Shown here piece after piece: positions 2,241 to 49,143 of a stretch of 64,000 nt of DNA. Made by a program: the position numbers and the translations under genes. Source of the DNA: Macrostomum lignano (taxonomy: Eukaryota); contig NIVC01002806.1 of NCBI GenBank assembly GCA_002269645.1, positions 42,501-106,500 on the forward strand. Direction: 5' to 3'. Position 1 is the stretch's first letter. The number at the start of each line of letters is the position of its first letter. The notes under the pieces are model-generated. The model made no database searches and was not told the origin of the DNA. It was given only the letters and a program-made list of their open reading frames with translations.

Positions 2241-3210
2241 CCTGACACTCATCTGACACTCACCTGACACTCTGACACTCCTCATTTGACACTCATCTGA
2301 CACTCATCTGACACTCATCTGACACTCGTCTGACACTCATCTGACACTCGTCTGACACTCATCTGACACTCATCTGACACTCATCTGACACTCATCTGAC
2401 ACTCTGACACTCCTCATCTGACACTCGTCTGACACTCATCTGACACTCATCTGACACTCGTCTGACACTCATCTGACACTCATCTGACACTCATCTGACA
2501 CTCATCTGACACTCGTCTGACACTCGTCTGACACTCATCTGACACTCATCTGACACTCATCTGACACTCTGACACTCCTCATCTGACACTCATCTGACAC
2601 TCATCTGACACTCGTCTGACACTCATCTGACACTCATCTGACACTCATCTGACACTCTGACACTTCTCATCTGACACTCGTCTGACACTCATCTGACACT
2701 CATCTGACACTCGTCTGACACTCATCTGACACTCATCTGACACTCATCTGACACTCATCTGACACTCGTCTGACACTCGTCTGACACTCATCTGACACTC
2801 ATCTGACACTCATCTGACACTCATCTGACACTCTGACACTCCTCATCTGACACTCATCTGACACTCATCTGACACTCGTCTGACACTCATCTGACACTCA
2901 TCTGACACTCATCTGACACTCTGACACTTCTCATCTGACACTCGTCTGACACTCATCTGACACTCATCTGACACTCGTCTGACACTCATCTGACACTCAT
3001 CTGACACTCATCTGACACTCATCTGACACTCATCTGACACTCATCTGACACTCATCTGACACTCATCTGACACTCGTCTGACACTCATCTGACACTCCTC
3101 ATCTAACACTTCTCACCTTACACTCATCTGACACTGACACTCGTCTGACACTCATCTGACACTCCTCATCTAACACTCCTCACCTGACACTCATCTAACT
3201 CGTCTGACAC
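2241..3210 (+). repeat. Minisatellite, 11-bp unit CTCATCTGACA (variant CTCGTCTGACA)
   Basis: Directly visible tandem array of about 1 kb with interspersed CTCTGACA/CTC variants. Confidence 0.97.
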
Positions 3211-3378
3211 TTGGAATCAAAAGTGAATATTCGTACTGCTGGAATTGAAGCAAATGAAATTGAAGCGACCTGATTGGTATTGCGTGATTGACTGCATTTG
3301 CTCTCAATCCATCTGCTTGAGCTCCAGCATCGCACTAAGACCCCCAAAAACCCAAACCAATCTGCACCACCCACGCAG

Positions 3379-6300
3379 TGCTCGCAAATGCCTTTAACGC
3401 AAAGCCATCGACCAGCGATTTGGAGTCCAGACAGGCGCTTCGCCAGCTTGCAGCCCAGCTGAATTTAACCTTCAGCGTCATTAGCAACACAAAGCGCAAT
3501 CACACGGCTCGCATTACGCTGAGGAATCCACTTAGCGGCGTCTGGCTTGGCGCTGGTATCCGCTGGCGCCTGTACTTCTCCTTGATGCGCCCGGTGCATC
3601 AGGTCATCGACGGGCCATTCCGCCTGACCCACCAGAACGGCTATCTCCACCAGCTGGAGCCCGTGGGCGACCTGGCCACAGGCGGGCTGGCGCCAGGCGG
3701 CGAGTACAGCATCCGGTATGTCGGCAAGGCCAACATGCTGGGCCGGTTCGATGCCTTCCCCAACTGGTACGCAGTGCTGGTTAACAAATCCGGCTTGGAG
3801 GTGGCCGCCGAAGTCCTGGCCGTGACAGCCAGCGAAGCGTTGGACTTTGTGAACCCGCTGACCAGGCCTGAGCAGTACAAGACTGGTCCGGATGATGTCA
3901 ATGAGCCGTGGACTCCGTTCAAGAGGTTTGCGCCTGTAGCTGACTTATAGCACCAGCTGGCCAGCAGCCTGTGGTGTTTAATTGAGCCGCTAATCATCAC
4001 AACAGGGGGGGGGGGGGTTGTAGCCTAGTGGTTAGAGCGTCGGACTCTTGACTGGAAGGTCGGGGGTTCGATTCTCGATCTACTCGAAACAATTTGTGTC
4101 GAGCAAGATACTCAACTTTGCATTGCAGTTGGTGGTGCGGCTAGTTAGTAGATTTGGTAGTGTAGCTGGTGGTGTAGAGTTGGCAGTGCAGCTGGTAGTG
4201 TAGAGTTGGCAGTGCAGCTGGTAGTTTAGAGTTGGCGGTGCAGCTGGTAGTGTAGAGTTGGCGGTGCAGCTGGTAGTGTAGAGTTTGCAGTACAGCTGGT
4301 AGTGTAGAGTTGGCAGTGCAGCTGTTACTGATAGTGGATTTGGCAGTGCGCCAATAGCACTAAAAATTTCCCGCTGTCCTCACCGCAGAGCGGAGATCCA
4401 AGCCGGCTACCTGGGTGGTGAGCGGCCCGGGCCCCAGCTGGTCCGCCTGGTGCCGAAGCCTGCGCTGGCCGAGCCGCTGGGCGGTGAGCAGCGGCCGCCG
4501 AGCACCGACTGTCTCCTGGCCGGCCTCAACGTAGCTTCTTCATCGTCTGGTGGGGACAGCAGCGGCTGCAAACCTGCCGGTTCCTCCGAGGCAGCCGGGC
4601 TGCTGCGAGAAGCAGCCGCAGAGGCCGCGGCTGCAGCTGCTGGTGGGCCCTGCACAGCCGGCGAGATGAACCTCCCCCGCTGGACGGCCAGCCTGCAGCT
4701 CTGCGATAACAGCAGCAGCAAGTTCGGCAAGCTGCTGACCAACCTGACACCGGGCCAGGCTTCTGAGGCCTACGAGCTGCTGCTTGATCCGAAGGTGGGC
4801 AATTGGAAGAATTTCACCTCACAAACAGGCCTCATTAAGTCCTAACAAGCCTCACAGCACAGGCCTCATTAAGTCCCAACAAACCTCACAAACAGGCCTC
4901 ATTAAGTCCCAACAAACCTCACAAACAGGCCTCATTAAGTCCTAACAAGCCTCACAGCACAGGCCTCATTAAGTCCCAACAAACCTCACAAACAGGCCTC
5001 ATTAAGTCCCAACAAACCTCACAAACAGGCCTCATTAAGTCCCAACAAACCTCACAAACAGGCCTCATTAAGTCCCATCTTCCAAAAACCGACCTCTTCC
5101 CCATCCACCCAGTCGGGCCAGGCCGTCCTGTCCGCAGCCACCCCTGTCGGCCTGTTCTGGGCCGCCCAGTCGCTGGTGTCGCTGCTGCAGCCCGGAGGTC
5201 GTCTGGCCGTCCGCCGCCTGTTCGACTATCCCCGCTCGCAATACCGCGGCCTCATGCTGGACGTGGCCCGCAACTTCCTGTCAGTCGAGGAAGTCGTTCG
5301 CCTTATCGACGCCATGTCGGCCTGGAAGCTCAACCGTCTCCATCTTCACTTGTCCGACGACGAGGGCCTCCGACTGCCGCTGACCGCCGCGTTCCCGGCC
5401 GCCAGCCGGCGGTGCCACCCGCTGAGCGGCGAGGCCTCCGACCAGCCGGTCTGCGCGCAGCCGCCCCAGCTGGGCTCTCACCCGACTCAGTGGGGCGCCC
5501 CGCCAGGCTGCGGCAGCTACAGCGCCCAAGACTACGCAGCCATCCTGCGCCATTCTGCCAGCCGCTTTGTCCGGGTGGTGCCAGAGCTGGACACACCGGC
5601 TCATTCTCTGGCTGCTATACTGGCTATGAAGGTTTCACCGCTGTCCTTGATATTGTGGGGGATGGGGTTTTGTGAGGTATGGGATTTGGTCGGGGTGGTA
5701 TTTCGTGAGGTATGGGATTTCATGAGTTATGGGAATTCTTGGGGTATGGGATTTCATTAGGTATGTGATTTGTGAAGTATGGGATTTCGTAAGTTATGGG
5801 AATCGGATTCCGTGAGGTATGGCATTCCGTGAGGTATGGCATTCCGTGAGGTATGGCATTCCGTGAGGTATGGGATTTCATTAGGTATGTGATTTGTGAG
5901 GTATGGGATTTCGGGAGGTGTGGGATTGGGTCAGGTATGGTATTTCGTGAGGTATGAGCTTCACAAGACGTGGGATTTTGTAGTATTGGGTTTGTTTGGT
6001 GTGGGATTTTGCGAAAATATGATACACGAGATTCTGTTTCTGATGGGATTTTCTTCCAGTGATTTGTAATCTATCTACTAGAAGTAGCCAGAAAGCGAAT
6101 GACTAAAATTTCTACGCCAATTCGCACCGCAAGGCGCAGGGCGTGGACCTGACAGACCCGGAGGATCCAGGCGGCCAGCCGAGCCCGCAGGCCTTCACCA
6201 ACAACAGCGTGAATCCGTGCCTTCCAGCTGGCGCCCAGTACATTCTGGACCTGATGCGGGGCGTCAGCAAGCTGCACGCAGCCGCCGGCCTGCCGATGCT

Positions 6301-9300
6301 GGAGTACCACTTTGGCGGAGATGAGGCGCCCAATGGCACCTGGACTAACTCGCCTGCGTGTCGCCGCATGCTGAGCATTCCGTGAGTCTGTTCACATGTT
6401 GAGGATTACAAATTAAATTTTTGAATCGGCCTTTCGATACACTAGCAGTCGCCATACAGACACACTGAGGATCGCCCTATAGACACACTCAAAACGCCCT
6501 ATAGACACACTGAGAATCGCCCTATAGACACACTCAGAATCGCCCTATAGACACACGGAGAATCGCCCTATAGACACACGGAGAATCGCCCTATAGACAC
6601 ACTCAGAATTGCCCTATGGACACACGGAGAATCGCCCTATAGACACACTGAGAATCGCCCTATAGACACACTCAGAATCGCCCTATAGACACACTCAGAA
6701 TCGCCCTATAGACACACAGAGAATCGCCCTATAGACACACTCTGTATCGCCCTATAGACACTGAGAATCGCCCTATAGACACACTCAGAATCGCCCTATA
6801 GACACACTCAGAATCGCCCTATAAACACTGAGAATCGCCCTATAGACACTGAAAATCGCCCTATAGACACACTGAGAATTGCCCTATAGACACACTCAGA
6901 ACGCCCTATAGACACACTGAGAATCGCCCTATAGACACACTGAGAATCGCCCTATAGACACACTCAGATTCGCCCTATAGACACACTGAGAATTGCCCTA
7001 TAGACACACTCAGAACGCCCTATAGACACACTGAGAATCGCCCTATAGACACACTCAGATTCGCCCTATACACAGACTGAGAATCGCCCTATAGACACAC
7101 TCAGATTCGCCCTATAGACACACTGAGAATCGCCTATAGACACACTGAGAATCGCCCTATAGACAGACTGAGAATTGCCCTATAGACACTGAGAATCGCC
7201 CTATAGACACACTCAGATTCGCCCTATAGACACACTCAGAATCGCCCTATAGACACACTCAGATTCGCCCTATAGACACACTGAGAATCGCCCTATAAAC
7301 AGACTGAGAATTGCCCTATAGACACACTGAGAATCACCCTATAGACACACTCAGAATCGCCTGTCGCCATACATGTATTTAGCAGCAGTGCTCAAATTTC
7401 CATACGAACCAGACTATCACAGCTGGTGATTCCCCACCTTCCAGGCCGGACCAGCCGGTGGACGCGGACGCGGTCAGTCGCGTCAATCTGCGCCGCCTGC
7501 TTGCCGAGGCCGCGGACGCCGGTGTTGACGCTCTACTGGGCTGGTCTGATGGCTTTGCTGGCGCGGATTTGCGACCGTTTAATCTGAGCAGCCTTGTAAG
7601 AGGATAGCTAGCCCACGAAATCGGTACCCAGGCCAAGAAGAATAATTTTGAAGCGTTTAACTAGCCTACTGAGTTAGTAGAAAGTTAAGCGCCAGCATAA
7701 CGATTCTTGGACGACACTTAGGCGACTCTTACTTATTTCTCTGTGTACTCGTAGCTCTTCTTCGTCGCACTAGACGCGCTTGAGTCGTTAAGAAGTCACA
7801 GAAATCGCCATGTAACAAAACAAAATTTTTGTCTTCTGCAGAGGTCGGCAAACATGCGGCCCCCGAAGCCTCTCTATCCGGCCCTCGGGTTCTTTGAAAC
7901 TTCACAATAGCAATCCCGCCTTCTCACGGTCTGTCTCTTCCGCGGTCTCTTCGTTTTGCGCGGCGCTCTTTATGTGCCAGCGGCCCAGGCTCGATTCCAA
8001 GTGCAGTCAAATTAATTCGTGGCTAAATTGAAATTTCAGCTTGGCTCTGCTCGTGCAGTTGACGCCCCTGAGGGCTAACCCCAAAGGCACAGTGAAGTGT
8101 ACATGCCTAACGATAAAATAAAGTTAGGGCCGCTGTACACTCCAGTGTAAGTGTGTGTGCCTGCTCAGGGGAGTCAGCGGAATGGACAGTAATGCCTCAC
8201 CCGGCTGTGTGACAATGTCGCTTAAAGTGCGCCAGGGTGCAGACCCTTTTTACTACTTTTAGTAGTAGTGCTGCGCAAATTTCGCCCGCTATTCCAACCG
8301 ACCAACCAAACAAACTCACAGACCGCCGGTATTCGCCGGCCGCGTAAAGTGGTGGCCGTGCCGTGGCACCTCAAGCCGTCGCCGCGCGACCTTGCCGTTG
8401 CCGGCTACAGTCTGGTGATGGCGCCGGCCACGCGGCTGTACCTGGACCACCGGCAGGAGCCCGACCCCGAGGAGCGCGGTCTCTACTGGGCCGCCAATTT
8501 CACCGACTTGTACACCGTTTTCTCTTACGACGCCAAAACCGACGCCGCCGCGGCTGGTCCCGACGCTGACATTCTCGGCATCTCCGGCGCGCTCTGGACA
8601 GAGACGGCGCGCCAGCCGGTGCAGGCTTTTAGTCTGCTGGCGCCGCGCGTTCTGGCGCTATCCGAGCGCGCCTGGCACCACGCCGACTGGGAGGGCGCGG
8701 CGTAAGTAGGGAAATAAGACGCTGGCCTCTGGACTCAAATAGAAGTGACTTCAAAACAGCTCCATAAGATTTCCTTCTGCAATAGTATCCCGTGAGGTCC
8801 GTAGGATCAACTTTGGTTAACTTATTACCTCTGGGGGGCAATATTATCAGAGTTTTAATGTGTGTCAGCTGCCCGTGACTTGGGAGAGCTAAAAAATACG
8901 TATTTTATAGCAATGGATAAAATGAATAAAGACAGGTATTTGCCATAGACAGTAGATGTCGATTTTTGTCCCCTACCATATACGAGAGTGGGGACCACTC
9001 TCGACAGTCGATACTACAATCAGCTTACTTGGCTAACGTTTTGGCTGCATAATTCGTACTTTATTATTCATTTTCAGTCCTACAGACGGCGGCCAGGCTG
9101 CCAAGGCGCGGAGCCGCGACTACGCCGAATTCGTCAGCAGCGTCGGCCACCGGGAGCTCGGCCGGCTGGCCAGCTTCGGAATTAAGTTCCGTCTGGCGCC
9201 GCCCGGTGCCCGCCGGCTCGGCGGAGACAGCGGCGGCTTCCTGCTGACGCACGAGCTGCCCGGCGTGCGGCTGTTCTATTCGCTGGAGAGCGGCGCCACG

Positions 9301-9941: not shown

Positions 9942-11668
9942 TCATTCCATCAGCTCGTCTTCGTCATGCACTGATGAATAAGATCCTTCCAGGCACTGGC
10001 TCCGAAATCGAGTCACCACAACAGCGCCGATGAGGCCCATTGTTAGCGCAGTTATCAGGGCGTACGCGCAGAAGAACAGCTTGTCAGCTGATGCCGCGAC
10101 GGTGGCCCATTCGCTGCTAACAGGATTTTCTCCATTATTGTCTAAATCATTCTGCTGCTGATCTGCTGGATTAAGCTTTGTGGCCGTTTGCGATCCTTTT
10201 CTACTAATGAGCCGGTTGAGGAAGAGCGCGCGGATCAGCCGGCTGCTGACGCGAGCGCTGCTATGCTGCTTGGAGTGGCAGTCGAGCACGAACGCGTTGC
10301 AGAGCACGTTCAGCATTGACATTATCACTGCGATGCCGAAGTACCAGGCTGCAGCGGAGAGTAGGTCATGTGTTGAGGTATCTTATAGTATACTGTGCTA
10401 ACTTAATCACGTGACTCACTGATGAGCGGCACGGACTCGCTCTGCGTAGGCGTGTAGTTGCCAGCCAGCTGCAGGAACACGCACATGGACAGCACGATGG
10501 TGATGCTGAAGGAGACTCGCTCGCCGCACTCGGCCGGCAGGCGGAAGGCGACGGCTGAGATAGCAAAGAGGAGGACGCTAGGAAAGAGCAAGTTTGTCAC
10601 GTAAAACGCCGGCCGTCTCTGTAACGAAGTACTTTGCGCCTTGAAGTTCATAGAAATATGTTAAAGAAATGGATGTTTCTTACTTGAAACTTGATGAGGA
10701 ACCGAATCTGATCTTGTCCAGCAATCACTTTTTGCTTTAGTTGAAGTTTTTGAACGCAGAATTCGTTGTTGGTCATCAGATAAGCCTCAATTGGAACTAC
10801 GCCGGAAATTGGTTTAACATTTAGCATTATGGTGGTCCTAGACTGCATTTGGGAATTCAACCACAGGCTGCATGTCTGACTGTCAAACGGAAACCAGAAC
10901 ATCTTCATACGGCATTTTAGGGTAACGACCAGCACAATTCCTTGATGAACTTCTCCGGTGCTTGTAATCAATACAGGCGACTTGTCCAAGTTGACATCTA
11001 TGATTTCAAGCCTGTGTTTAAATAGCACAATATTTACTGTCGCACGAGATTCGATTGCAAAATAGTGAAAATCCTTACACATTATTTGCTGTCGTGTCGG
11101 GCCGCCAAACCTGACTGGGAGTCAGAAAGATTCCGGCAATGTGGTCAAGTGAAGAGTTGAATCTTCCACGCCAGGAGAGCCTCGAGTCGAACCATTGCTG
11201 CAATTTTTATGTACCATACCTTGTACCAGCTATTTTTCAAACTGAACTTAATGTAAAAAATATATAAAATATATAGCCTGGCGTGTAACGATCTATTTGT
11301 CCCGAGACAAAGAAGAATACCTTTGCAAGCCAGATCTGCAACGTTACTTCCTGCGACGCCGAGTTCTAAAAAAATATTTTTCAGTCATTGCTGAAGTCAC
11401 TGCTTTGATCAGTGCGCTACAATTTCGAAATCCATCCAAATACTCGTAGTTACTGTATATAAGGCTTTACCACGTTGGCTAGGCTGAATAAGTAGATGTA
11501 CAAGTTGAGAGTGTTGGCAGATCCATTGTCAGGCGGTGGCCGAACCGCGCTGTTATACTCTACATCGAGGTTCAGTGCCGCAACAACAGCAGCGTCAGGT
11601 GAACCGATGTCACTGGTTCTTGCGGCTGGAGCAGCGAACAGCAGAGCGCAAGCGATGATGAAGCACAT
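9942..11668 (-). CDS. Cys-loop ligand-gated ion channel subunit A (divergent nAChR/5-HT3-like, predicted cation-selective)
   Basis: Six exons 11668-11471, 11365-11321 (the 45-nt exon typical of the family), 11197-11079, 11011-10684, 10618-10420, 10348-9942; phases consistent. Signal peptide, YNSAVRP, WFDSRLSW, WRPD, Cys-loop CRMKMFWFPFDSQTC, RRPAFY, M2 GERVSFSITIVLS, M3, short loop, M4. Confidence 0.92.
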
Positions 11669-13881
11669 GTGTATACGATAGTCTGTTTCGCTTGAAAACC
11701 GTAAAATATCTAAAACAGGATCAGCCAGTGTGTTGTGGCTGAAGTATGCTACTGGTGCAGGGACGGTGCATGTGCCCAGATTAGCCGGCAGATTCTATTT
11801 ATTCTCTGCTTACTTCCCACATTGTTTGCCAACCCAAACTTCATTGACGCTTATTGTTTGCCCGATCCCTAGACTCTTCCGCAGTCACATGCAGCCATGA
11901 TCCTCAAACAAAGCTTGTTAAGTCAATCAATCCAGTCTACCACGGAAAATGAATATGATAGATTTGGTCGCTCATTCAGTCAATACGCTTGCAAAGGCAA
12001 TAATTATCGTCATTCGTCCCTACGGATCAGGATACGGTTTTTTGTTATTCGGAGGTAACTATATTTTTTCCGTCTTTTAGAAGCCTGATTGGTGGTAAGC
12101 CCTGCTTGCCATGCCTCAACCTCAATTTCTGCCGGCTTAAGTCACTACCCTATCTCTAGCAACTACGCCAGCTACCGAATTTTTAATATTGACTGTGCCA
12201 CATATACAGCTTAAAATTTCTGTAAAGCGACCTTAGTTAAGCGTGTGCCATTGCTTTTCGGTGACCTTGTCGTGACCTTGTAGACGTGGCATAGTCAATA
12301 TAGTAGAAATTCGGTAGCTGGCGCGGTTGCCAGGGCCCTGTCGGCTTGTCGATGTTCAAATCTACGGCCACATCTATGCTTTACCCGAAAGAGACTGGGT
12401 GACCGCACAGATCCAAACACTAGATGTGTCAAATCAATATAAAAATGGTAACTTTTTTCGCTCAATTTCACACATAGAATGTCAGTTTTGCCTTACACTA
12501 TTCAAGACTAAAAATATAAATGAACGCAATATGCGTAAAAAAACAGGTTCCAGTGTTCCAAAAAGACAATTGGTATGAACAAAAACATGTTGAACACCGG
12601 AGCAGGATAACACCTCGTACTGTTACAGAATTACAAATATTGGAAAAACTAATTAGGGAGAAGTTATTGAAACCACTTCAAAGAAGTATCGAGGAATCAG
12701 CCAGGAGATCTGGTTTCAGTGTGCGCTTAGTGAAACTCTTTCTAGCTTTTTTTCGATCCACTGCGATTGCAGGGCTGTGCATGCTCCGCGTCTTAAGTCT
12801 GCACCGTACCAGTGTCGAGTCATGAATTCCAAGATGTGCTTGCATATTCAGCAAAGGGATTCAAGCTCGCAACAAACTGCATGGCAGCATAGTCTGGGGC
12901 TGGGGGTGAAACAGTTCCCTGAAATAGACGTGCCGGCGTGGATGTTGGATTTCTGGGGCTGCAGATGAAGGCGAGTCGGCTGTTGTGACGGAAATGACCC
13001 GGCCGGCTCGTAAATGCACCTCATACATGTATCTGAAATATTTATGGCTGCTGCAGTTTTCCAGTAATTTCTGTTATCGACCCATATTCTGCGTTGATCA
13101 GTGACAGACAAAATTTTATTAGCCTAGCGGACACAGTCTTGAGGCGAAACCGACATTCTGAGTGGAATCGAGCGAAAAAAGTGACCAACTTTTTATACTG
13201 AGATGACATCTGGTAGTACTTTTTGGATAGGCAGCGAGTGATACGCTCTGCTAAAATAAACGAGTTATCTATACGTCTGGAACGGACAAACCAGCAAGAG
13301 GTAGGAAGTGAGCCAGGCCAACGATTTCCTATTTAGTAGTTTCAGCTACTAAAATTTATTAAACTCTGCTTGTGAGTTTAGAGCTCAATGATTGAGTTTA
13401 GAGCTCAATGATAAAGATAGATTGAAATCATAATTTTATTACTTCAAAATTAAAGCTCATAAAGATAAAGCAGAAAAGCAAAAGGAACGAACTCTCGTTT
13501 AAAGACTTCGACAAGACAAGACGATCTCTTTTTCGGGCAGCGGTTGCGCCGCTATCGAGTTTTCGGATCACAGCAGTAATGCACAATGCACGCATCCACC
13601 TATTCGTTGGCTTGACAATTACGTCTTGCTCAAGTAAAACAAATGTTATGGATTGCTGTGCTAAATATAGTGGTGTTAATATTAAAAAAAATGATAAGAA
13701 ATGGATTCAGACTTGATGAAATAAGTATCTGCAGTAGCACATACCATGCCAGTACATGTCCCACCGTTACAACCAACAGCCTTAGTCAGACAAAAAATAT
13801 ATTGCTCTTTAAGTGTAAGTGAAAATGATGAATATCACGGCGATCCAGTCTCACAGATCCATACACTCGTCGCTCGTGGGC

Positions 13882-15737
13882 TTAGGGCTTTGTCTTATTG
13901 CCTGGTCGGTCCAGAGTCTTCGCTGAAAAATCGCCTTCCAAGCATTCTGCACCAGATAAAGTGGCTACGGCGAAGAAGCAGATTAGAAAAATGGTTAAAA
14001 TTGTAACCACAATGTATGTGGCGAAGAACATTTTATCGGCCGATGACACAACAGTGGCCCATTCGTTGCCATGGGGACTAGCCGGGTTTTCCGGCTCGTG
14101 GACATTGGACTGCTGATCTGTTTCATTTGTTGGTGCCACCTTCATTGGTCTCCTAGCGACAAGCCGGTTGAGGAAAAGAACGCGGATTAGCCGGCTGCTG
14201 ACGCGAGCGCTGCTGTGCTGCTTGGAGTGGCAGTCGAGCACGAATGCGTTGCAGAGAACGTTCAGCATGGTCGTCATCACTGCGATGCTAAAGTACCAGG
14301 CTGCAACGAAGTTATTACATTTGTATAGGCCATTTTTTGTTGAATTGATATAACTTATTTATCCAAAGAGACTCACAGATGAGCGGCATGGACTCGCTCT
14401 GCGTAGGCGTGTATACGTGTAGTTTCCAGCCAGCTGCAGGAACACGCACATGGACAGCACGATGGTGATGCTGAAGGAGACTCGCTCGCCGCACTCGGGT
14501 GGCAGGCGGAAGGCGAACACAGAGATGGAGAGGAGGAGGATGCTGGGGAAGAACAGGTTCGTCACGTAGAACGCGGGCTTTCTCTGAAAAGATTTATAGA
14601 AGTTATGCTTTTCCGTGGAAAGTACGGGTTTATGCAAGTCGTGCGTACTTGACCGAGATTCTTCAGTGGGATTGACCAAGTCGTATGGCACGACATTGAC
14701 TTTGTTACCGGATGAGTGTTATAAATTTGCCATTTTAAAGTGCTTTTTAATTACCGAAATTTACTTACTTGAAACTTTACAACAAACCGAGCCACGTCCT
14801 GCGTAAGCACCTCTTCTTTCTCCATAAGCAATTCCTGAATGCAGAACTCATTATTCTGCATCAAATAGTCTTTCCTTGAGATGTCTTTGAAAATCGGAGT
14901 TACGTTAAGCATCAGCGTTCGCCTTTCTTGAATTTGTGATTTGAACTGCACTTCGCAACTCTGGCTGTCGAATGGGAACAGGAACATCTCCATCTGGCAC
15001 TTGAAGGTGACGAGCTGCGCAATTCCTTGAGTAACGTCTCCTCTTTCCATAATCATGACAGGTGACTTTTCCAAATTGGCATCCTTGATATCAACTCTGT
15101 TGCGAAATGGTCAGATTTTACTATTTACTGTCCATCTGGATTTTGCGAAATTCCATTGAAACTTACGCGTTACTGACTGAAACGTCCGGCTTCCGACTTT
15201 GGTCCGCTAAGATTGTCGGAATGTCGCGAAATGTCGAGTTAAACTTTCCTTTCCATAAGAGCCGTGAGTCTAACCATCTCTGAGATTTGGAATGCAAGTC
15301 AGCATTGAATTTTATATCAAAGCGAAAGGTACTTTAATACGAAAAGAACACGCGAGCCCGGCTTTGAACCAACCTTTGCTAGGTAGAAATGCAGAGTCAC
15401 CTCCTGAGAAGCCGAGTTCTGAAATCGATTGAATTAAGCAATTTTTCCTTTGCATACACATGTAATTGAAAACAGAAATATAAGAATACCTATTCGGCAA
15501 GCACAATCAGCTTACAACTTTCACAAGGTTGTACAAATAGACATATATGCTGACTGTGTTGGCAATATCATTGTCCGGCGGCGGTCGGACCCGGCTGTTG
15601 TACTCGGTGTCGATCTTCAACGCTGACTGCACCAGGGCGTCCGGTGAGGGAGCAGCATCTTTTCTGGCTTCAATGAAGGATGCAGTTGCGATGAGGAGAG
15701 CGCAGACAATAAAGCCGCGGATTCCGGGAGAGTCCAT
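13882..15737 (-). pseudogene. Cys-loop channel subunit B, frameshifted by an 8-bp insertion in exon 5
   Basis: Exons 15737-15516, 15418-15374, 15279-15167, 15096-14769, 14583-14377, 14300-13882. Exon 5 is 207 nt versus 199 nt in A and C; insertion TATACACG at ~14408-14420 shifts the frame after M2 (GNYT-YTRLRR). Loop A also lacks the Trp of WxPD (QSRKPD). Confidence 0.8.
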
Positions 15738-16794
15738 CTCAGTAGTTAGCTTCTGAGAGTGAGTGACGAGTCTTCCTTTCCATCATCAAATGCATTTTTA
15801 TCGTTTAATCGGTTGACTAATAGCTTCATGGGAAATGGACCCATTTGTTTGCACTGTCATTGCCATATTTACTAATTTACCTAAGCTTTTTGATGGGTTT
15901 CAGGCTCCTGTTAGCCCCACTGCAGAAGCTACTGGTTATCTGAGGCAAACTTTTATTGTTTGAATGCCAGTGAATATCGTTTTTGGCGAATCGGTTACTC
16001 AAATAAATGCATCGCTGAATTTCAGTAATTCAGCCACATGGTGTTGAAGAAGTTTCTACAAGCCGGTATAGAATACTCATTTAATTTGCTCGTGAGCTGT
16101 CCAAACACTTGTCGTTCGTGAAATGTAGTTATAGCCAAAACATAAATTCGTAGAATCGATCCATCAATCGTTTGACGGAGCCGCTTAGTAAATAAAGTCT
16201 ATAAGTCTACGAGAAGCAAACATTTACTTGCAAAGTCGCAAATTGCTATGGCGCCTAAGGGTCTATGAGTCTGGACTCTGGTGAGTCTGCCTAACTAGTT
16301 AACCACTACTTCGCTCGTATTTACCTAGACTGTAGCAGACTTCCTTAAATTTTGGCTTATTTGATTCAATTTTTTTTATTAGAGGCAGGGGGGTTGTGTG
16401 CACCCTGGCGCACTTTAAGCGACATAGGCACACAACCGGCGAGAGGCATTACTGCCCATTCCGCCGACTCCCCTGAGCAGGCATACAAGCGCGCGGATGC
16501 GTTGATTGTAAAAATGGGATTTTAACCCCAATTTAGGGCTCTAGAAAAAACTTCAGATTTTCTTCTTTCTTAACTCTTCTCTCATCTCTTTCCTTTTCGG
16601 TCTCTTCTCTCGCCTATCTTTTCTCTCTCATATCTTCATTCTTCTCTCTACCCCATTCCCTCTTACATTTGTATTTTCTAAAATGGGAGTATCTCGGCGT
16701 TGCTTGTTTGGCAAGCTTTCGAATATTAGATTCAAATGTTTGCTTTCGGCTCAAAACCCGTGATTTGTAGAATTGCTATTGTACAATAGGATTC

Positions 16795-17680
16795 TCGGGT
16801 GTCAGTTTGGCAGAATCATTTTGCCATTCTTACATTTACGAGTGAACCAAGACATTTATTGACGGTGAGCATGCGCCGTAACTATCTGTCCAATAAAATC
16901 TAATAAATAAACATTCGAAATGTTGCTCTTAAATATCAATTTTATCCAAAAGAACAGTTTAACGCTGCGGTCAATCAAAGCAAACCCTCCTCAGTTCCCT
17001 CTTTGTAACTGTCCTGCACAGCATGTCAGTTAAAGCTCAGTTCCTTCCAGGCATTTAACGTTGGACACGCTGATCGCCAAGACGCAAATGCCAACAGTTG
17101 CAAGCACCGGCACCAGTGAGAATGCGATGAAGAACACTTTGTCGGCCGATGTCACGACAGTGATCCACTCGTTTCCATGGCGACTAGCTGTGCCGTCTGT
17201 TTGACAGGCATCCGATTTTTGATCAGCCGCATCGGTTTCCGTAGCATCGTTTGGCCTGCTCTTCCCAGCGACAAGCCGGTTGAGGAAGAGAGCGCGGATC
17301 AGCCGGTTGCTGACACGAGCGCTGCATTGCTGCTTGGAGTGGCAGTCGAGCACGAACGCATTGCAGAGCACGTTCAGCATGGTCGTCATCACTGCGATGC
17401 TGAAGTACCAGGCTGCAAGGCAAACTGGTGCATATTAGTAAGCAAGCAAATGAGTTGAAGTTGACACAGCGTCGCGTCCATCTCGTGACTCACTGATCAG
17501 TGGCACGGACTCGCTCTGTGCGGGGGTGTGGCTTCCGGCCAGCTGCAGGAACACGCACATGGACAGCACGATGGTGATGCTGAAGGAGACTCGCTCGCCG
17601 CACTCGGGCGGCAGGCGGAAGGCGAACACAGAGATGGAGAGAAGGAGGATGCTGGGGAAGAACAGGTTCGTCACGTAGAA
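16795..17680. repeat. Near-identical ~885-bp block shared with 20341-21223 (3' halves of channels C and D)
   Basis: Exons 5-6, the intervening intron and the 3' flank are almost letter-for-letter identical at an offset of about 3546 bp, with only scattered substitutions and one 3-nt indel. Confidence 0.97.
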
Positions 17681-18780
17681 GCTATACTTTCTCTGAAATC
17701 AGCGTTTTTTTCTTCTGCGTTAATGGATTAATGCCTTTGCACCCAATGAAAATAAAACTTCATCCTACCTGAAACTTTATTTGATAGCGCAGTGCATGCT
17801 GCAATTTTACAATGACCTCCCGTTTGATTTTTAACTCCTGAACGCAGAACTCGCTGTTTTTGGTTAAGAAATCTTCAGCCGATGCGTTTTCAAGTTCTGT
17901 TTTTATATCCAGTGTCATGGATGCCATAGTCTGCATTCGAGGATTGATTGAAAAACTGCAGCTCTGACTGTCGAATGGAAAAGATAGCATCTCCATTCGG
18001 CACTTGAAAGTGATGACCAGCTCCTTTCCGTGATACACTAAGCCGGTGTTTATGATCGATGCGGGTGAGTCGTCAGAGATTTCTTTTGATTCCAACCTGT
18101 TTTTATCATGGAAAACCGATTCAAAGCTTTTACTAAGCAAGTAGGTGAAGAATTCCACCCTAGCATATAAATTCGAAAGTCACTCACACTTTGGTCACTG
18201 TTATAGCCGGTTTCCAAATCAGATTGGAATCAATTAAAATGCTATGAATTTGGTCGAACGTTGAATTGAATTTTCCAAGCCAAGACAGACGCGTATCAGT
18301 CCAAACCTGGAATATAGAACCGGAGGTAAACTATGATTTTTGACCTCGTAAGCAACCTTATTGTGATCGAGTTTAATGAAAAACTGTCTTTGGTACTCTT
18401 TCCAGCCAGAACTGAAGCGTCACTTCCTGAGACGCCGAATTCTGAAACAATAAATATTATTAAGATTGATATGGACTGCAAGTCGAATATTGAAGAACTG
18501 CACGAGGTGCTTGTAGCTCAGAGAGTTTACAATTTGGAAGTGGGGCACTCACCACGCTGGCGAGGCTGAACAAGTGGACATACAAGTTGATGAGGTTGGC
18601 GGTTCCGTTGTCGGGCGGCGGGCGGACGGCTCTGTTGTACTCGGTGTCGAGTTTCAGCGCTGCCACCACGGCAGCGTCGGGGGAGGCAACGTCCACGGCT
18701 TCTACAACAGCGAGTAGGACCGCTCCGGTTGTGATGAGGCACCAGAGAGAGGGCATGATGGAGACTGGCCTCTGTGACAT
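17030..18780 (-). CDS. Cys-loop ligand-gated ion channel subunit C (divergent)
   Basis: Exons 18780-18553, 18441-18397, 18306-18188, 18096-17769, 17692-17494, 17412-17030; intact frame; Cys-loop CRMEMLSFPFDSQSC; M2 GERVSFSITIVLS. The ORF-track start at 18786 is GTG; first in-frame ATG is 18780. Confidence 0.92.
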
Positions 18781-19298
18781 CTTCACATTGTACGTGGCAA
18801 CTATTCCACTTTTTTGCTATTTTCTCCCCTACTGCGCTTGCAAAAATAGTCTCGCTCGACTCTATCGCATGTTGTTTGCCAAGGCAAACTGGCGAATGAT
18901 AAGAGAGTCTTGCCTTTCTGCCTGCCTCAAAAATCAGACACGAGCTAATATTACATGTATTGGGCTTTCTGGCAGTCAACCGGGAAGCCGTGTTGGTCAA
19001 CAGAATTCACCCTGTTCGCCACTAATTAATGTTTAAACTGCAAATCATCTGACCCAGGATATACCAGACTGATGGATTGGCTGTTTGCTGATCATTTTTG
19101 CTATCTGCTGGACAGTCAACACTTTTTATTTGGTGAAGCAAGTCAAATTTTTGGGGCAATTGCAACTGCAGCGAAAAACTAGCTTATGTCGACTGAGAGC
19201 AGGAAATGAAAAATATAATATCCCGAAGCAGACTGTTGTCTAGCTGGGAGTCTCTCGCAGGCTTGGGGTTGTCTACAGATGGGTCAGTCAGACCAATA

Positions 19299-19711
19299 TC
19301 AATGAGTTAAACGTACGCAGACACAAAGCACTTAGAGAACACTGCAATCAAAAATTAGAAGCCTCGGAAACCTAGGACTCCTCCTTGACGGAAATAAGGG
19401 TGAGAGGTTCCATATTTATAGCGCGGGATTCACCACTGCTCCATGCGCACAAAACCTCGTGACTTTGTTCTATTTTTAGAACTGACGTCACTTGGGGTCT
19501 CCGGGCAGAGTGCACTAGGCTGTGACTCAGTGTCTATTTTTAGAAACATGAACACTGCATGTGTTTAGAGAAGGGAAGGACCTTAGGCACGTGATTCTCC
19601 CGTAAACACAGACCAGCGAGTGCAGTAAACATTTTTACTGCACTTTAGGAAACAAGTGCTGATTGCAGTGTTCTCTAAGTGCTTTGTGTCTGCGTACGTT
19701 TAACTCATTGA
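19299..19711. repeat. 52-bp perfect inverted repeat pair (19299-19350 / 19660-19711) enclosing ~310 bp
   Basis: TCAATGAGTTAAACGTACGCAGACACAAAGCACTTAGAGAACACTGCAATCA and its exact reverse complement; no target-site duplication seen. Confidence 0.95.
19391..19545 (-). promoter_or_regulatory. Compact promoter-like cassette: Inr, TATA, MEF2 x2, CRE, AP-1
   Basis: TATAAAT on - strand at 19420-19414 with Inr-like TTATTTC about 25 nt downstream; CTATTTTTAG (MEF2 consensus) at 19470-19479 and 19534-19543; TGACGTCA at 19483-19490; TGACTCA at 19523-19529. Motif matches only. Confidence 0.5.
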
Positions 19712-20575
19712 CTTGGAAACAGACTCCGAGAAAACAAGATCTGTCATGTGACTTGCTCACAGGACAGGGAAAACAGGCCAATAGCGTGACTTCAAGACTG
19801 GAACAAAACAAGAGCAGACCACAGCAGAGAAGCTTGTGGCTGCAAACAGGAGCGCAGAAAACGGGCAGATAACGGGCAGAAAGCGGGAATGGGGCAGCAA
19901 ACAGGCAGACAAAAGGGAAGACGGGAAGCTGACCAGCGGCAGACAGCGACCCAGGGCGAGGGCGAGGGTGAGGGAAACTGCTGACCAAGGGCGACGCTTA
20001 ACACCAAACTTGCGGATCACTACACTAGATTAGCTCGTATAGCATTTGCAACTGCCTGAGGCTCGAGTAGGAAGGGTCTCCAACTGCGAGCTCGTACAAC
20101 TGTAAATCGCGTTGAAAATAAAGTAAAAAACAACGGTCAGCTGATTTTAGAGATCAGGGTTACAAGAGTTTTTATTGCGAGACAGCGCGTCAACAAGGTA
20201 AACATAGTTTTTGGATTCACTATTCAATCATCGGATTTGCTTAGTTTTTATTCAATATTCCATTTAGCTTAACATCCCGGTTCCATTCGAAGAAAATGTT
20301 TGGTTTGCGCGATTTTACGAGTCCTGAGTCAGCTCAGTCGTCGGGTGTCAGTTTGGCAGAATCATTTTGCCATTCATACATTTACGAGTGAACCAAGACA
20401 TTTATTGACAGTGAGCATGCGCTGTAACTATCTGTCCAATAAAATCTTATAAATAAACATTTGAAATGTTGCTCTTAAATATCAATTTTATCCAAAAGAA
20501 CAGTTTAACGCTGCGGTCAATCAAAGCAAACCCTCCTCAGTTCCCTCTTTGTAACTGTCCTGCACAGCATGTCAG

Positions 20576-22710
20576 TTAAAGCTCAGTTCCTTCCAGGCAT
20601 TTAACGTTGGACACGCTGATCGCCAAGACGCAAATGCCAACAGTTGCAAGCACCGGCACCAGTGAGAATGCGATGAAGAACACTTTGTCGGCCGATGTCA
20701 CGACAGTGATCCACTCGTTTCCATGGCGACTGGCTGCGCTGTCCGTTTGACAGGCATCCGATTTTTGATCAGCCGCATCGGTTTCCGTAGCATCGTTTGG
20801 CCTGCTCTTCCCAGCGACAAGCCGGTTGAGGAAGAGAGCGCGGATCAGCCGGTTGCTGACACGAGCGCTGCATTGCTGCTTGGAGTGGCAGTCGAGCACG
20901 AACGCATTGCAGAGCACGTTCAGCATGGTCGTCATCACTGCGATGCTGAAGTACCAGGCTGCAAGGCAAACTGGTGCATATTAGTAAGCAAGCAAATGAG
21001 TTGAAGTTGACACAGCGTCGCGTCCATCTCGTGACTCACTGATCAGTGGCACGGACTCGCTCTGTGCGGGGGTGTGGCTTCCGGCCAGCTGCAGGAACAC
21101 GCACATGGACAGCACGATGGTGATGCTGAAGGAGACTCGCTCGCCGCACTCGGGCGGCAGGCGGAAGGCGAACACAGAGATGGAGAGGAGGATGCTGGGG
21201 AAGAACAGATTCGTCACGTAGAAGCCCGGCTTTCTCTGAAATGGGTGTTTTAATCTGGTGGGTTGATCCAAATTAGATATTTTTTATGATTTGACCAAGA
21301 TTTCACCGCTTGGATTTCACAATCATTGGAAAGAGCGTTTTGCAATTTGTGAAGAAACCAAGGCTTTAAATGTACTGAAATGATCTTGTTTTACCTAAAT
21401 ATTAGATTAGATTAGATTAATTAATTTAATTAGATTTCGACATTTTAGAAATAAATAATTATTCGCAGGATTGTGGACATCCTGGCACAGCGCCATCGGC
21501 GACCGTCCCGCAACCAGAGCTGAGGCGATTCTGCTCATCTCGCTGACTCAGCTGAGCACATGCCAGCGTGCGCATACTGTACGCAGGCGCGCACTCAAAC
21601 TCGCACAGGGTCTCGAAAAACCCAGTTTTCAGCAGGTTTTCTTTGTCTCAAAACCCACAAACAGAAATTCTAAAATTTAGCAGAAGCAAAGAAACAAATA
21701 CCTGAAAAGTCAGGCGGTAGCGCACCAAATGCTGACCGGAAACCGTCTTTCTTTTCATTGACAACTTCTGAATGCAGAACTCGCTGTTCTCTACTAAAAA
21801 CATGTGTCGCGTAGAATTGACAATCTCCGTATCAACATTCAGTACCATCGAGTCCGTCTGCTGCATTCGAGTACTGATCCAGAAGCCGCATTTCTGCCTG
21901 TCGAACGGGAAGAAGAACATCGCCATCTGGCACTTGAATTTGACGATCATCTCCATCCCGTGATAGACCGAGCCGGTGCTCATGATCGAAGCTGGAGCAT
22001 CACGTGCGATTTCCCTTGACGCCAGACTGTTTTGAGTGCACATAATGGATTCATTAAATGGTTTGCATTGATTGACGCAAGAGTTGGGTCATCATGAGCC
22101 TATTTGAACTAGATGATGTCAATCTTATTACCGAAAAATCTCACCTCCTTACTACTGCCGTTTCCGGTCGCCAAATTCGGTTGCCAGCAATGTAAATTCT
22201 TTTAATATTGCCGAACGATGAGTTGAACTTTCCTAACCAAGACAGTCGCGAGTCAGTCCAAATCTGGAAAATTAAAAAAATTGTCCTAAAAATTCTTTAT
22301 GAGCAGATTTTCTCGTTTTATTACCCTTTCAAGCCAAAACTGCAGCGTCACTTCCTGAGAGGCCGAGTTCTGAAATATTATGATATTGTCCGCTTTTGTC
22401 AATGACGGATCGAAAACATCGCAGATCGGGTCGAAAGACAAAAATTGCACTACAGGGACAAAAGAAACAACCTTACCACGCTGACGAGGCTGAACAGATA
22501 GATGTACAAGTTGATGACATTGGCGGTTCCGTTGTCGGGCGGCGGTCGGATCGCACTGTTGTACTCGGTGTCAAGTTTCAGCGCTGCCACCACGGCAGCA
22601 TCGGGCGAGGCAACATTCGCGGCTTCGGCAACAGCGAGCAGGACGCAACAAGCGGTGATGAAGCGTCCATAATAGGAAATAATCGGATGACGCGTCCGTG
22701 CGATTAACAT
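20576..22710 (-). CDS. Cys-loop ligand-gated ion channel subunit D (divergent)
   Basis: Exons 22710-22477, 22369-22325, 22263-22145, 22026-21702, 21235-21040 (196 nt, one Leu shorter in M1), 20958-20576; intact frame; Cys-loop CQMAMFFFPFDRQKC. Confidence 0.92.
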
Positions 22711-23747: not shown

Positions 23748-26185
23748 TTAGTTGGCCAGCCAAATGTCGCTGGTGCAGTCTCCGCCTGGGTAGCGCATCT
23801 CGTGCGCCAGGACCGGACCTTCGGGCTCGGCTCCGTAGTCCACCAAGAAGTTCTCGTCAATGGTCAGGCCGCCTTTCTCCGTGTCCACATTGATGCGGAC
23901 CATCATGGTGCCGGACCTATGGATTTCAATGCATCAATGGGTTATCGACTCGGCTGAACAGATCTGAACCGAAGTGGCCTTGACCTGATCTCAGCTGGAC
24001 TGAGCTGGTCTGAACTGATCTGAACTGGTCTGAACTGGTCTGAACTGGTCTGAACTGGACTGAGCTGGTCTGAACTGGACTGAGCTGGTCTGAACTGGTC
24101 TGAACTGGTCTGAACTGGTCTGAACTGATCTGAACTGGACTGAGCTGGTCTGAACTGGTCTGAACTGGTCTGAACTGATCTGAACTGGACTGAGCTGGTC
24201 TGAACTGGTCTGAACTGGTCTGAACTGGTCTGAACTGATCTGAACTGATATGAACTGGCCTTGAACTGATCTCAGCTGTTCTGAGCTGGTTTAAAATCTA
24301 AATCGGTCAGTCAGGATGAGTCTGACCTTGCACAGACCTGGTCTTTGGTCCCTCGGTCTAAAGTGGAGCAGGGCGGCCAGGCTTATCTAGCCTTATCTTA
24401 TCAGTTTATTATTCAAACCGAACCAAGGTGGTCTTCAGCGATTTTGCCTGACCTATTTTACTGCGCCTACCCTGGACCCGCTCTACAAATTAATCTACGT
24501 CACACGAGCTATGTACGCACGAGTGACGTTTTCAAATGGAAATCTTCCGTTTGAGAGATAAGCTTGCTTCATACAGCTCAGTTTCGGGAAGTCGGGAACA
24601 TTATTGTATGAGCTCATCAATAAGTATCCACAAGCTTCTATTCGCTTTATTCTACGACTAAGAGACGACTAAAAGATGTTGCGAGACTGCTTTTCACTCA
24701 CTTCATCAGTTCCGGGTAGAACTGCTTGTCCCAAGCGGAAAACAGAGACGTGGTCACGTACAGTCGTCGACCGTCCAGGCTTAGCTGCAGCATCTGCGGC
24801 CCGCCAGCCACGCGGCGGCCTTTCACAAACAGCCTCTTTGGCTGCTCGGTCAGCTCCGGATCCTCGGTAACGCGTACGCCCTCGCCAGCCGCGATGCTAC
24901 CGCCGAACCAGCACTGGCCAACCAGGCGGGGCTTGTGCGGATCGGTGATGTCGTACTGGCGCAAGTCTCCGTGAATCCAGTTGCTGATGTACAGGTAGCG
25001 GTCGTCAAGGGAGATAAGGATGTCGGTGATCAGAGAAGGCATGTTAGGGAGAGCCCAGCCCTCAACTTTCTTGGGTGGCACGCTGATGACTCGCTCGGCC
25101 ACCCACTTGTCGGAGCCCTCCGGCCGGTAGAAGTGGTGCACGGTGCCGCTCAGGGCACAGCCCACGAAGCCGTGGACGCTGGTCGGGTCGTGCAGGAAGC
25201 GAACTTCCAGCGGAATTTGGCCACCCTGGTCCGCCAGGTTGATCGTCTGCAGCCGCTTCCGGTTGCGCCAGTCCCAGAAGTGCAGGGAGCTGCCGTAGCC
25301 CCCGGCGTTGAGGTCATCCAGACTGAAGCCGCGCTTGAAGCAGCGCGGAGCGCCCCACTCGCTGCTCACCATGATGTTGTGCAGCGGCTGGTACCAGTAG
25401 TCGTAGCCAAACGGAGTCACATCCGACTCTGCCTGCCACGTTCCTTTTGTTTTGAAAGTCTTACCATCCAGCAGAACGAAGGCGCCCTTGCCTTCGCCCT
25501 TCGGATCGCCCATAGTACTGATCATGATTTCCCCACTGGCCAGGCAGTGAGTCGTGTGAGGAGTCGCCAAGCCCAGCTTGTGCAATTCGGTCGGCTCAAC
25601 CGCGCAGTGGACTTTCGGTGCTCTCTCGCAATCGCCGCCGACGTTCACAACGTAGATGCGGTCGCTTTTCAGGCAGGGCAAGATCATCTTGTCGCGCACG
25701 ACACTGCAGTCGCCGTGGCAGCTGGAGCAGACGTTCCAGCCGGAATGGTGCAGCTCGTCGCCGTTGTGCGGCATGTAGCATCGGCCGATCACCGACGAAA
25801 AGGTCGGCGAGGCGTCGTCAACGTCAACCACGCTGAGGTAGTCGGGCCGGTTGCCGTCGGGCACAATGCAGGTCACGTAGAGGAGCTTCTCGCGCGGTCC
25901 GGAGCGCATGGCCTCCAGAGGGCTGCTGTAGCCGGGACCCGAGCCGCCGCAGGCTGGCGAATGGGATTAGAAATTAAATTATTTTTGGCAAGGTAATTTT
26001 GTGCCGACTAAGCGAACTTTGTCTAGGTTTGATATTCCTAGGTTTGTGATAAATCGCATTTTCACCGTCTTTGTACGTACAGAACCGTAACGATTGAATT
26101 GAGGACAGATTGAGGACAGATTCTGCATACAAAGTTACGTATTTAAATGAAAACCAAACAAGAATGAAAGGTATTACTCACACAT
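23748..26185 (-). CDS. SELENBP1: Selenium-binding protein 1 / methanethiol oxidase (SBP56 family)
   Basis: Exons 26185-26182 (ATGT|GTGAGT), 25953-24702, 23916-23748(TAA). [103 protein letters not shown]-terminus [17 protein letters not shown]. Confidence 0.96.
23990..24290 (+). repeat. Intronic 10-bp repeat TCTGAACTGG
   Basis: About 30 tandem copies with GACTGAGC variants. Confidence 0.95.
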
Positions 26186-32740: not shown

Positions 32741-32815
32741 GAATCGCACGACAGGATCTGCTTCATACAGAGACAATATCCGACCCAAAACTGATTGAAT
32801 CTTCCAACTTAAACG

Positions 32816-36395
<3,580 letters not shown>

Positions 36396-38970: not shown

Positions 38971-39924
38971 TTCCAGTGCTTAGCAGGCCGTCGAAGGGAG
39001 TTGCTTTGCTAAGCAAATCGGTATGCCGCTTGCCGCTGAAAGTTGCCTTGAGTGTCGCTCAGAAGCAGCCCCGTCCCTTCCCGCGTCTGAGTCTGCCTCT
39101 GCCTTTTGTCTATGGGCCAGAGCACTTTTAAAGCCTCCCTCTTCCTAGCAAACATTCCACTGAAAATTAAAGTGCACTAAAAAATTGTTTTTTAAACGCC
39201 TAAAAAGCGCATAACTATTTAAACTACTAACAGTAGATTGAAATTTTTAAATATAGTTTATTGTTTTCTAACTTGCTTTATCCCCAAAATAGCAGGCTTA
39301 AGTTAGTGATGCAGTAAGCCGAGTCGGCATCAGCTTTGCACATTTCAGATAAGCCAACACATTGCGCACAAGTACATGTACTTGATGGCTATGTATTTAA
39401 GATTTTTGCTAATAGTCGCAGGCAAGTGGGTGAATTCAGTTTGATCTTGTACTCGAATATAGGCAAGTGCATTTTTAAACTATAATTTGTACTGCTTGAG
39501 GTGTGCAGCAATTGGGATAGGGGGGGGGGGTCACGAGTAGATTATATATCTTGTGAGGAGATTAGCAAAATTTCAAAATTCGCATTCGCCGCAACACAGA
39601 AAGCCGAACCGCAAGCCGTTTGGGGTCGAAAAGAAATCGCAAAGCAAACGGAGCAACAGAAGAAGCGACAGAATGCGGGACTGTTGTGCTTCTGCGGAAA
39701 CAGAGAAAGAGCTCTGGCTTGCGCTGAGCTTCCCGCTGCTGTCACAGTCCCTGCCTTTGACGGCTGCTAATTTTACCTGGTGTGTTGCAGATTAAGCATT
39801 GCATGAGGCCAAGGACATGTTGACGTTACTTTGTAAAATGAATGAGTTTTGGAGTTCGCGTTATTTACTTTTATAACTTTGTAACAGTACTATAATATAA
39901 TAGATTGACCATATAATTGTCAGC

Positions 39925-40548: not shown

Positions 40549-49143
<8,595 letters not shown>

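Follow-up and report, generated by a model that had tools for sequence, protein, structure and literature searches.

Four tandem Cys-loop receptor genes of Macrostomum lignano without the acetylcholine-binding aromatic box: candidate lineage-specific orphan cation channel subunits

What do Cys-loop receptors respond to when the residues that bind acetylcholine have gone? The question is raised by a stretch of 64,000 nucleotides of the flatworm Macrostomum lignano (assembly GCA_002269645.1, contig NIVC01002806.1, positions 42,501 to 106,500 of the forward strand; hereafter, the window), in which four Cys-loop receptor genes, copies A to D, lie head-to-tail on the minus strand, bounded by the copy A stop codon (position 9942) and the copy D start codon (ATG, position 22710). 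An initial annotation, made from the sequence alone, proposed a novel-ligand or chemosensory receptor family. The evidence assembled here suggests, with a probability of about one half, that the four genes encode non-cholinergic orphan channel subunits, specific to Macrostomum, tandemly amplified and derived from nicotinic receptors; as far as their sequences tell, they are best read as functional, cation-selective, non-alpha-like subunits.

The gene models, built manually on the basis of open frames and splice sites, span ~1.7-2.1 kb each at a spacing of ~3.5-4 kb, and all four comprise six exons, including a 45-nt exon 2, with GT-AG introns at identical positions. A six-frame motif search locates, on the minus strand, four occurrences of the M2 peptide GERVSFSITIVLSMCVFLQL and, once each in the window, the loop A peptides WRPDTTANN, RKPDVSVSN, WKPAITVTK, and WRPETAVVR; the proposed array of four Cys-loop genes on a six-exon plan is borne out, with every motif in place. 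A tblastn search found no fifth copy or fragment within the window. The preservation of the six-exon structure with its introns points to an origin by DNA-level tandem duplication. The genes are organized as follows, with exons in the order of transcription:

Copy A, 9942-11668, minus strand: intact Cys-loop subunit of 431 residues, uninterrupted open reading frame, all introns GT-AG.
Copy A exons, minus strand: 11668-11471, 11365-11321, 11197-11079, 11011-10684, 10618-10420, 10348-9942 (stop included).
Copy A M2, 10525-10466, minus strand.
Copy B, 13882-15737, minus strand: six-exon plan kept, frame broken after M2 in the window.
Copy B exons, minus strand: 15737-15516, 15418-15374, 15279-15167, 15096-14769, 14583-14377, 14300-13882.
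Copy B M2, 14490-14431, minus strand.
Copy C, 17030-18780, minus strand: intact subunit of 433 residues, uninterrupted open reading frame.
Copy C exons, minus strand: 18780-18553, 18441-18397, 18306-18188, 18096-17769, 17692-17494, 17412-17030.
Copy C M2, 17599-17540, minus strand.
Copy D, 20576-22710, minus strand: open frame of 433 residues, one M1 codon missing (near 21187).
Copy D exons, minus strand: 22710-22477, 22369-22325, 22263-22145, 22026-21702, 21235-21040, 20958-20576.
Copy D M2, 21145-21086, minus strand.

Both Pfam domains of the Cys-loop superfamily are recognized above the gathering cut-offs in copies A, C, and D, with E-values of 1e-29 to 1e-31 for Neur_chan_LBD and 1e-20 to 1e-23 for Neur_chan_memb (1.8e-31 and 5e-23, respectively, in copy A). 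The architecture comprises (i) a signal peptide, (ii) an extracellular domain (ECD) with a 13-residue Cys-loop containing FPFD, the motif CxxxxxxFPFDxxxC being found in all four copies, (iii) the four transmembrane helices M1-M4, and (iv) a short intracellular loop. [quoted passage not shown] The segment ECGERVSFSITIVLSM, present in all four copies, places Gly at -2', Glu at -1', Arg at 0', and Leu at 9', with no Pro insertion at -2', and the 20' ring is not acidic (N/N/S/S in A/B/C/D). Motif search and alignment agree with the initial annotation that the four genes share the same M2 with Glu at -1', and this residue, together with the cation-type M2, supports the predicted cation selectivity of the pore.

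The binding site was mapped by pairwise alignments to alpha7, beta2, and 5-HT3A and by a 175-sequence alignment. In A/B/C/D, the position of the loop A Tyr (alpha7 Tyr93) is occupied by N/S/T/V and that of the loop B Trp (alpha7 Trp149) by Q/Q/R/R, whereas loop C, shorter than that of beta2, contains neither Cys nor Tyr, the positions of alpha7 Tyr188 and Tyr195 being gaps or Gln. The alignment upholds the reported loss of the loop A Tyr, the loop B Trp, and the loop C Tyr and vicinal cysteines, and the shortness of loop C; both the vicinal Cys-Cys and the principal-face aromatic box that characterize alpha-type subunits are absent. The pocket is instead polar and charged: the loop B position holds Gln or Arg, and Lys, Glu, and Arg abound in loop C. 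Such a composition argues against a hydrophobic or quaternary-amine ligand. In addition, two extra cysteines are conserved in all four genes, exemplified in copy A by NNEFC (exon 4) and CLEG (exon 6). The Cys of (N/S)xEFC, directly before loop C, is invariant across the wider family described below, and that of C[LI]xG, located after M4, occurs in A-D and in most full-length relatives; the C-terminal tail may be linked to the ECD by a disulfide.

The only relatives at more than ~32% identity to A-D are uncharacterised M. lignano proteins, at 39-53% (UniProt A0A1I8H7M4, A0A1I8JJA8, A0A1I8GYC2, A0A1I8HXL4, A0A1I8JJA1, and A0A1I8GX25; NCBI PAA53260.1), in keeping with the orphan status claimed for the array. 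None of them is the same gene as any of A-D, the best reaching 53% identity, and two, A0A1I8GYC2 and A0A1I8HXL4, keep the loop A Tyr that A-D lack; they resemble the window genes in an identical or nearly identical M2 and M2-M3 linker and in their tandem arrangement. Common to A-D and the M. lignano proteins from databases are (i) an M2 of the form GER[VMIL]S[FL]x[IVF]TIVLSMCVFLQ, (ii) the absence of the loop B Trp, (iii) a short loop C, and (iv) the EFC and C-terminal C[LI]xG cysteines. The database proteins contribute 13 distinct M1-M2-M3 contexts and the window four, so that the family has at least 17 copies. PAA53260.1 comes from the NCBI annotation of the assembly, which we take to be transcript-based, and on that ground this relative is probably transcribed.

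When 1.84 billion cluster representatives were searched exhaustively with HMMER profiles, with the M. lignano database relatives rather than A-D as queries, M. lignano proteins took the top scores, above a broad nAChR-like and 5-HT3-like background from many phyla; some models that join two copies, from molluscs and one annelid, interleave with the M. lignano hits, with scores inflated by the double copy. A word-indexed profile search recovered just the same four relatives and missed others found exhaustively. In a neighbor-joining tree (100 bootstraps), the core family is supported at 96%, A-D with A0A1I8H7M4 at 86%, and C with D at 100%. The family clade contains M. lignano sequences only (96-99% bootstrap), with no orthology to a known non-alpha subunit in this tree, and its placement relative to the nAChR and 5-HT3 references has a bootstrap of 27%. 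Of the 159 other subunits in the alignment, 120 have the loop B Trp; of the 10 core members, none does. The family retains the -1' Glu and 9' Leu. Six UniProt models of M. lignano (P0001, P0121, P0122, P0123, P0397, and P0400) fuse either two or three adjacent family copies or one family copy with a neighboring C-type lectin or fibrinogen-domain gene. The joining of adjacent copies indicates that the family is tandem elsewhere in the genome too, and through such fusions the family is under-counted and its architectures are misreported in databases. Literature searches found no paper on this Macrostomum family.

The distribution of divergence along these proteins is unusual. Over the 36 pairs of family members, identity is 26-52% in exons 3-4 and 66-98% in M1-M3, against an M1-M3 mean of 39% (sd 9%, 95th percentile 54%) in a background of 6757 non-family pLGIC pairs at the same ECD identity, and all 36 exceed the background 95th percentile for the asymmetry between transmembrane domain and ECD. 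Column entropy is highest in loops B, C, F, E, and A, and the most conserved segments are M2, M1, M2-M3/M3, loop D/β2, the N-terminal helix with β1, and the Cys-loop. The variable sensor on a constant pore described in the initial annotation is to this extent real, with the pocket loops as the most variable part, but selection as the source of the constant pore is confounded by gene conversion, to which that constancy is partly owed in view of a tract shared by C and D and of a stretch of 70 nt across M2 that is identical in all four genes. The shared tract comprises:

Copy C conversion or recent-duplication tract, 16795-17708, minus strand: from 16 nt ahead of exon 5 to ~235 bp into the 3' flank, intron 5 and exon 6 included.
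Copy D matching tract, 20341-21251, minus strand: 97.8% identity over 914 bp to the copy C tract.

In exon 4, by comparison, C and D are 76.6% identical, and their synonymous divergence (dS) is 0-0.05 inside the tract versus 0.65-1.37 in exons 3-4; homogenisation of C and D, by conversion or by partial re-duplication, is clear from these nucleotide comparisons. Across pairs, dS in M1-M3 is 0.24-0.40, with C/D at 0.04, and in exons 3-4 it is ~0.65-2.3 or beyond estimation through saturation, the lowest value, 0.65, being that of C/D exon 3. Four-way identity at third codon positions is 66/92 (72%) in M1-M3 versus 25/146 (17%) in exons 3-4, and the G+C content of third positions (GC3) is 0.83-0.89 in exon 5 versus 0.38-0.68 in exons 3-4. 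No similarity of intron 5 was found among A, B, and C, so that the likeness of their pores at the sequence level requires either exon-limited conversion or constraint on synonymous sites. As regards selection, the ratio dN/dS (omega) in the ECD is 0.23-0.57 between paralogues, with dS saturated. The pocket loops are the fastest-evolving part, but omega is below 1 in every ECD partition measured, including 0.17-0.21 for C and B between the two locus copies described below, with no positive evidence of diversifying selection, and the divergence of the ECD reads as weaker constraint.

The integrity of the genes can be compared with a second copy of the locus in the same assembly, NIVC01000301.1:377455-399822, which is colinear with window positions 13721-38903 at ~97-98% identity. 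The two differ by ~2-3% plus several indels; they could represent haplotypes, different strains or assemblies, or, the M. lignano genome being partly duplicated, homeologues. In the window, copy B carries the following lesion:

Insertion of 8 nt (TATACACG/TACACGTA), 14408-14415, minus strand: copy B exon 5, M2-M3 linker.

The insertion lengthens exon 5 to 207 nt from an expected 199 and shifts the frame, with stops early in exon 6 and a coding sequence whose length is not a multiple of three; in exon 3, a 6-nt deletion removes the family-invariant Trp of WxPD. Rescue through an alternative donor at the insertion was considered and rejected, the phases being incompatible. In the second locus copy, copy B is intact, with the 8-nt insertion absent and an exon 3 of 119 nt in which the WxPD Trp is restored. 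The two versions of copy B differ by 7 synonymous and 5 non-synonymous changes (pN/pS 0.21), and those of copy C, intact in both, by 9 and 5 (pN/pS 0.17), none of the non-synonymous ones lying in M1-M4. Copy D shows 11 synonymous and 13 non-synonymous differences (pN/pS 0.36), and in the second locus copy it has lost the exon 4 acceptor with 56 nt of exon 4, and also 18 nt in M4. Given the ratios for B and C, these two copies at least are, on the evidence of the paired sequences, real genes under purifying selection on a short time scale. The same comparison portrays a birth-and-death family in which single copies are being lost, B in the window and D in the other locus copy. The lesions of B and D, the homogenisation of the pore in DNA, and a loop D Trp kept in A, C, and D all went unremarked in the initial annotation.

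On the reading preferred here, the subunits would assemble together or with other subunits into cation channels whose A-D principal faces would be unable to bind acetylcholine through cation-π contacts, and for which an extracellular cue of another kind would be the most likely activator. The module for gating and conduction (pre-M1, M1-M3) is held near constant, at least in C and D through gene conversion. This reading draws support from the size, lineage specificity, and turnover of the family, from loops E and F varying like the principal loops, and from the polar and charged pocket. Comparable orphans are known in other animals. Alpo4 from Alvinella pompejana is a lophotrochozoan nAChR-like receptor unresponsive to acetylcholine and serotonin (5-HT) despite wide screening (PMC10338036); like A-D it has a cation-type pore and no loop C Cys-Cys, but it keeps its aromatic cage (F103, W159, Y199, Y205, W65), whereas A-D have lost all principal-face aromatics. 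ZAC, encoded in vertebrates by a single-copy gene, is likewise a cationic Cys-loop receptor; its loop C is very short and poorly conserved, and ions, not a classical transmitter, activate it (PMC11536092). No specific relationship between its sequence and A-D was detected. The molluscan and lophotrochozoan nAChR expansions described by Jiao et al. in 2019 form divergent, lineage-specific tandem arrays, the molluscan ones being mostly intronless retrocopies (PMC6896357), in contrast to A-D, which keep six exons including the 45-nt exon. A term search of that paper finds no mention of flatworms, Platyhelminthes, Schmidtea, or Macrostomum.

Several observations weigh against this reading. First, the loss of the loop A, B, and C residues does not by itself imply a new ligand, as the initial annotation had taken it to do, because the gamma subunit of Torpedo, a genuine acetylcholine-receptor subunit, has Gln at the loop B Trp position (CSLVFRSQTYN, from a PDB peptide search) in the same register as copy A (CSLWLNSQMQ), and about one-quarter of the nearest invertebrate and vertebrate relatives likewise lack the loop B Trp. 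Second, the loop D Trp of the complementary face is W/Y/W/W in A/B/C/D, i.e., kept in A, C, and D. Third, lesions are present in B and D, in one or other locus copy, and the region of B, C, and D is uncalled in the GCA_002269645.1 annotation, as seen in the record of NIVC01000301.1. Finally, dN/dS between the ECDs of the paralogues is unreliable with dS saturated (pS 0.55-0.87) and cannot gauge positive selection. Taken as sequence, the pattern at the binding site fits two readings, a non-alpha partner in an acetylcholine-gated heteromer or a receptor for something else.

The first of these, in which A-D would be non-alpha complementary or structural subunits of acetylcholine-gated heteromers whose alpha-type partners, encoded elsewhere, bind the transmitter, is the strongest of the alternatives, although we consider it rather unlikely. 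Non-alpha nAChR subunits generally lack the loop C Cys-Cys, and a short loop C without it is typical of them. Together with the loop D Trp and the Gln of Torpedo gamma, this makes A-D fit the non-alpha class, although the combination of a missing Cys-Cys and a retained loop D Trp is not specific to that class. The best sequence match among solved structures is likewise a non-alpha subunit, beta2, by a negligible margin. Structural comparison was performed with Foldseek on an AlphaFold2 monomer of the M. lignano relative P0003, a mediocre model with a mean predicted local distance difference test score (pLDDT) of 62; the top matches of this model are B chains of muscle nAChR (9gu0_B, beta), yet muscle nAChR beta and delta chains, 5-HT3A, and alpha7 score nearly equally, and the result is non-discriminating. 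The muscle and Torpedo non-alpha subunits (gamma, delta, epsilon, and beta1) resemble A-D in the cation-type M2, the missing loop C Cys-Cys, and the loop D Trp; they differ in sharing only ~20-30% identity with A-D, with no orthology. Muscle non-alpha subunits are, moreover, single conserved genes with a defined alpha partner, in contrast to the large and fast-evolving tandem family of A-D, in which the complementary loops vary. A set of at least 17 members that diverge rapidly is sizeable for accessory subunits, the clade is Macrostomum-only, and loops E and F as variable as the principal loops would be unexpected if an acetylcholine-competent complementary face were required in all of them.

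A bolder proposal, nested within the preferred reading of A-D as non-cholinergic orphan subunits, is that they are peripheral chemosensory receptors convergent with the cephalopod chemotactile receptors, with each paralogue's pocket tuned to an environmental cue of its own; in its full form, the flatworm would have independently made at least 17 environmental or conspecific chemoreceptors, with a pore frozen by selection and conversion and hyper-variable polar pockets for non-cholinergic cues. We regard this as improbable. The analogy is close in several respects: the cephalopod receptors derive from nAChRs, leave the acetylcholine aromatic box unused, form non-selective cation channels, and lie in tandem clusters with a diversifying pocket (PMC11526382), and A-D share with them the nAChR-type origin, the missing box, the cation pore, the tandem lineage-specific expansion with birth-and-death turnover, and pocket loops that are the most variable part of the protein. 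The origins nevertheless appear independent, the clade being monophyletic and Macrostomum-only in a tree with nAChR and 5-HT3 references, and CRT1 (PDB 8EIS) is among neither the 60 best sequence matches nor the 50 best structural matches. The cephalopod pockets suit hydrophobic ligands (PMC11526382), in contrast to the polar and charged pocket of A-D, and for the cephalopod receptors sensory expression has been demonstrated. An omega below 1 in all ECD partitions measured also speaks against tuning of this kind, as does the lack of a demonstrated sensory role for the majority of expanded nAChR-like genes in lophotrochozoans (PMC6896357).

Least probable of all is the view that A-D are largely redundant or decaying duplicates in a polyploid-like genome, with a relaxed ECD and a pore that is merely the gene-conversion footprint of functional relatives, since, although the frameshift and lost Trp of copy B, the missing M1 codon of copy D in the window with its large deletions in the second locus copy and its higher pN/pS, the uncalled genes, the DNA-level identity tracts, and the high GC3 of the pore exons all favor it, A and C are wholly intact with all splice sites present, copy B is intact in the second locus copy, pN/pS is ~0.2 for B and C with M1-M4 of C free of non-synonymous change, and the coupling elements (Cys-loop, pre-M1, and M2-M3) show conservation in at least 17 copies.

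To our knowledge, nAChR-like expansions that look non-cholinergic are common in lophotrochozoans, almost none has an identified ligand, and the cephalopod chemotactile receptors are the sole worked-out case; the Macrostomum family is a further example of lineage-specific, divergent nAChR-like orphans, a kind already recognized. Its particular merits are (i) a compact, intron-containing organization in a laboratory flatworm open to RNA interference and transgenesis, and (ii) an extreme contrast of a pore that is frozen with a pocket that is free to vary, accompanied by continuing gain and loss of copies. If copy A or C can be expressed, the family would offer a tractable system for what such orphans detect and for how gene conversion and selection divide a channel into constant and variable modules. 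Were the chemosensory proposal to prove true, it would represent a second, convergent instance of the cephalopod innovation, in an animal ready for such manipulation. Independently of function, inventories of M. lignano channels undercount this family, its genes being missing in one public annotation and mis-fused in another.

The remainder of the window contains the following features:

Selenium-binding protein/methanethiol oxidase (Pfam SBP56), 24701-25966, minus strand: single frame of 422 residues, 2 kb from copy D.
GH20 beta-hexosaminidase exons (Pfam CHB_HEX, Glyco_hydro_20), 3339-3947 and 8226-8702, plus strand: upstream of copy A, on the opposite strand.
Innexin gene, 32813-36392, plus strand: Pfam Innexin 2.2e-63.
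Long open frames, 37231-38979 (583 residues) and 57875-60815 (a series of 110-306 residues), minus strand.
MORN-repeat protein exons (junctophilin-like), 47446-49143, minus strand: GC-rich region.
Soluble guanylate cyclase-like gene, 51508-56003, minus strand: HNOB 55293-56003, cyclase catalytic domain 51508-51936.
Retrotransposon remnant, 62306-64000, minus strand: RNase H domain preceded by reverse-transcriptase-like frames, extending to the window end.

The SBP56 frame is 100% identical to M. lignano BOX15_Mlig014905g2, a gene located on NIVC01000301.1, and a 10-bp repeat array separates it from copy D. The long open frames may be lineage-specific genes; the two that were scanned, of 583 and 306 residues (57875-58792 for the latter), have no Pfam match. 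The window is very rich in tandem satellites (26985-29264, 40854-41730, 45163-45991, and 23995-24290), with arrays such as 29 bp x 79, 40 bp x 22, and 23 bp x 36. Satellite arrays occupy the introns of the beta-hexosaminidase gene (2242-3211, 4816-5077, and 6423-7361), the innexin gene has beside or inside it a (GACA)n microsatellite (34944-35316) as well as a 7-bp repeat (33653-34110), and between the exons of the guanylate cyclase-like gene there are two satellites, one of 13 bp (51947-52479) and one of 28 bp (53110-54651).

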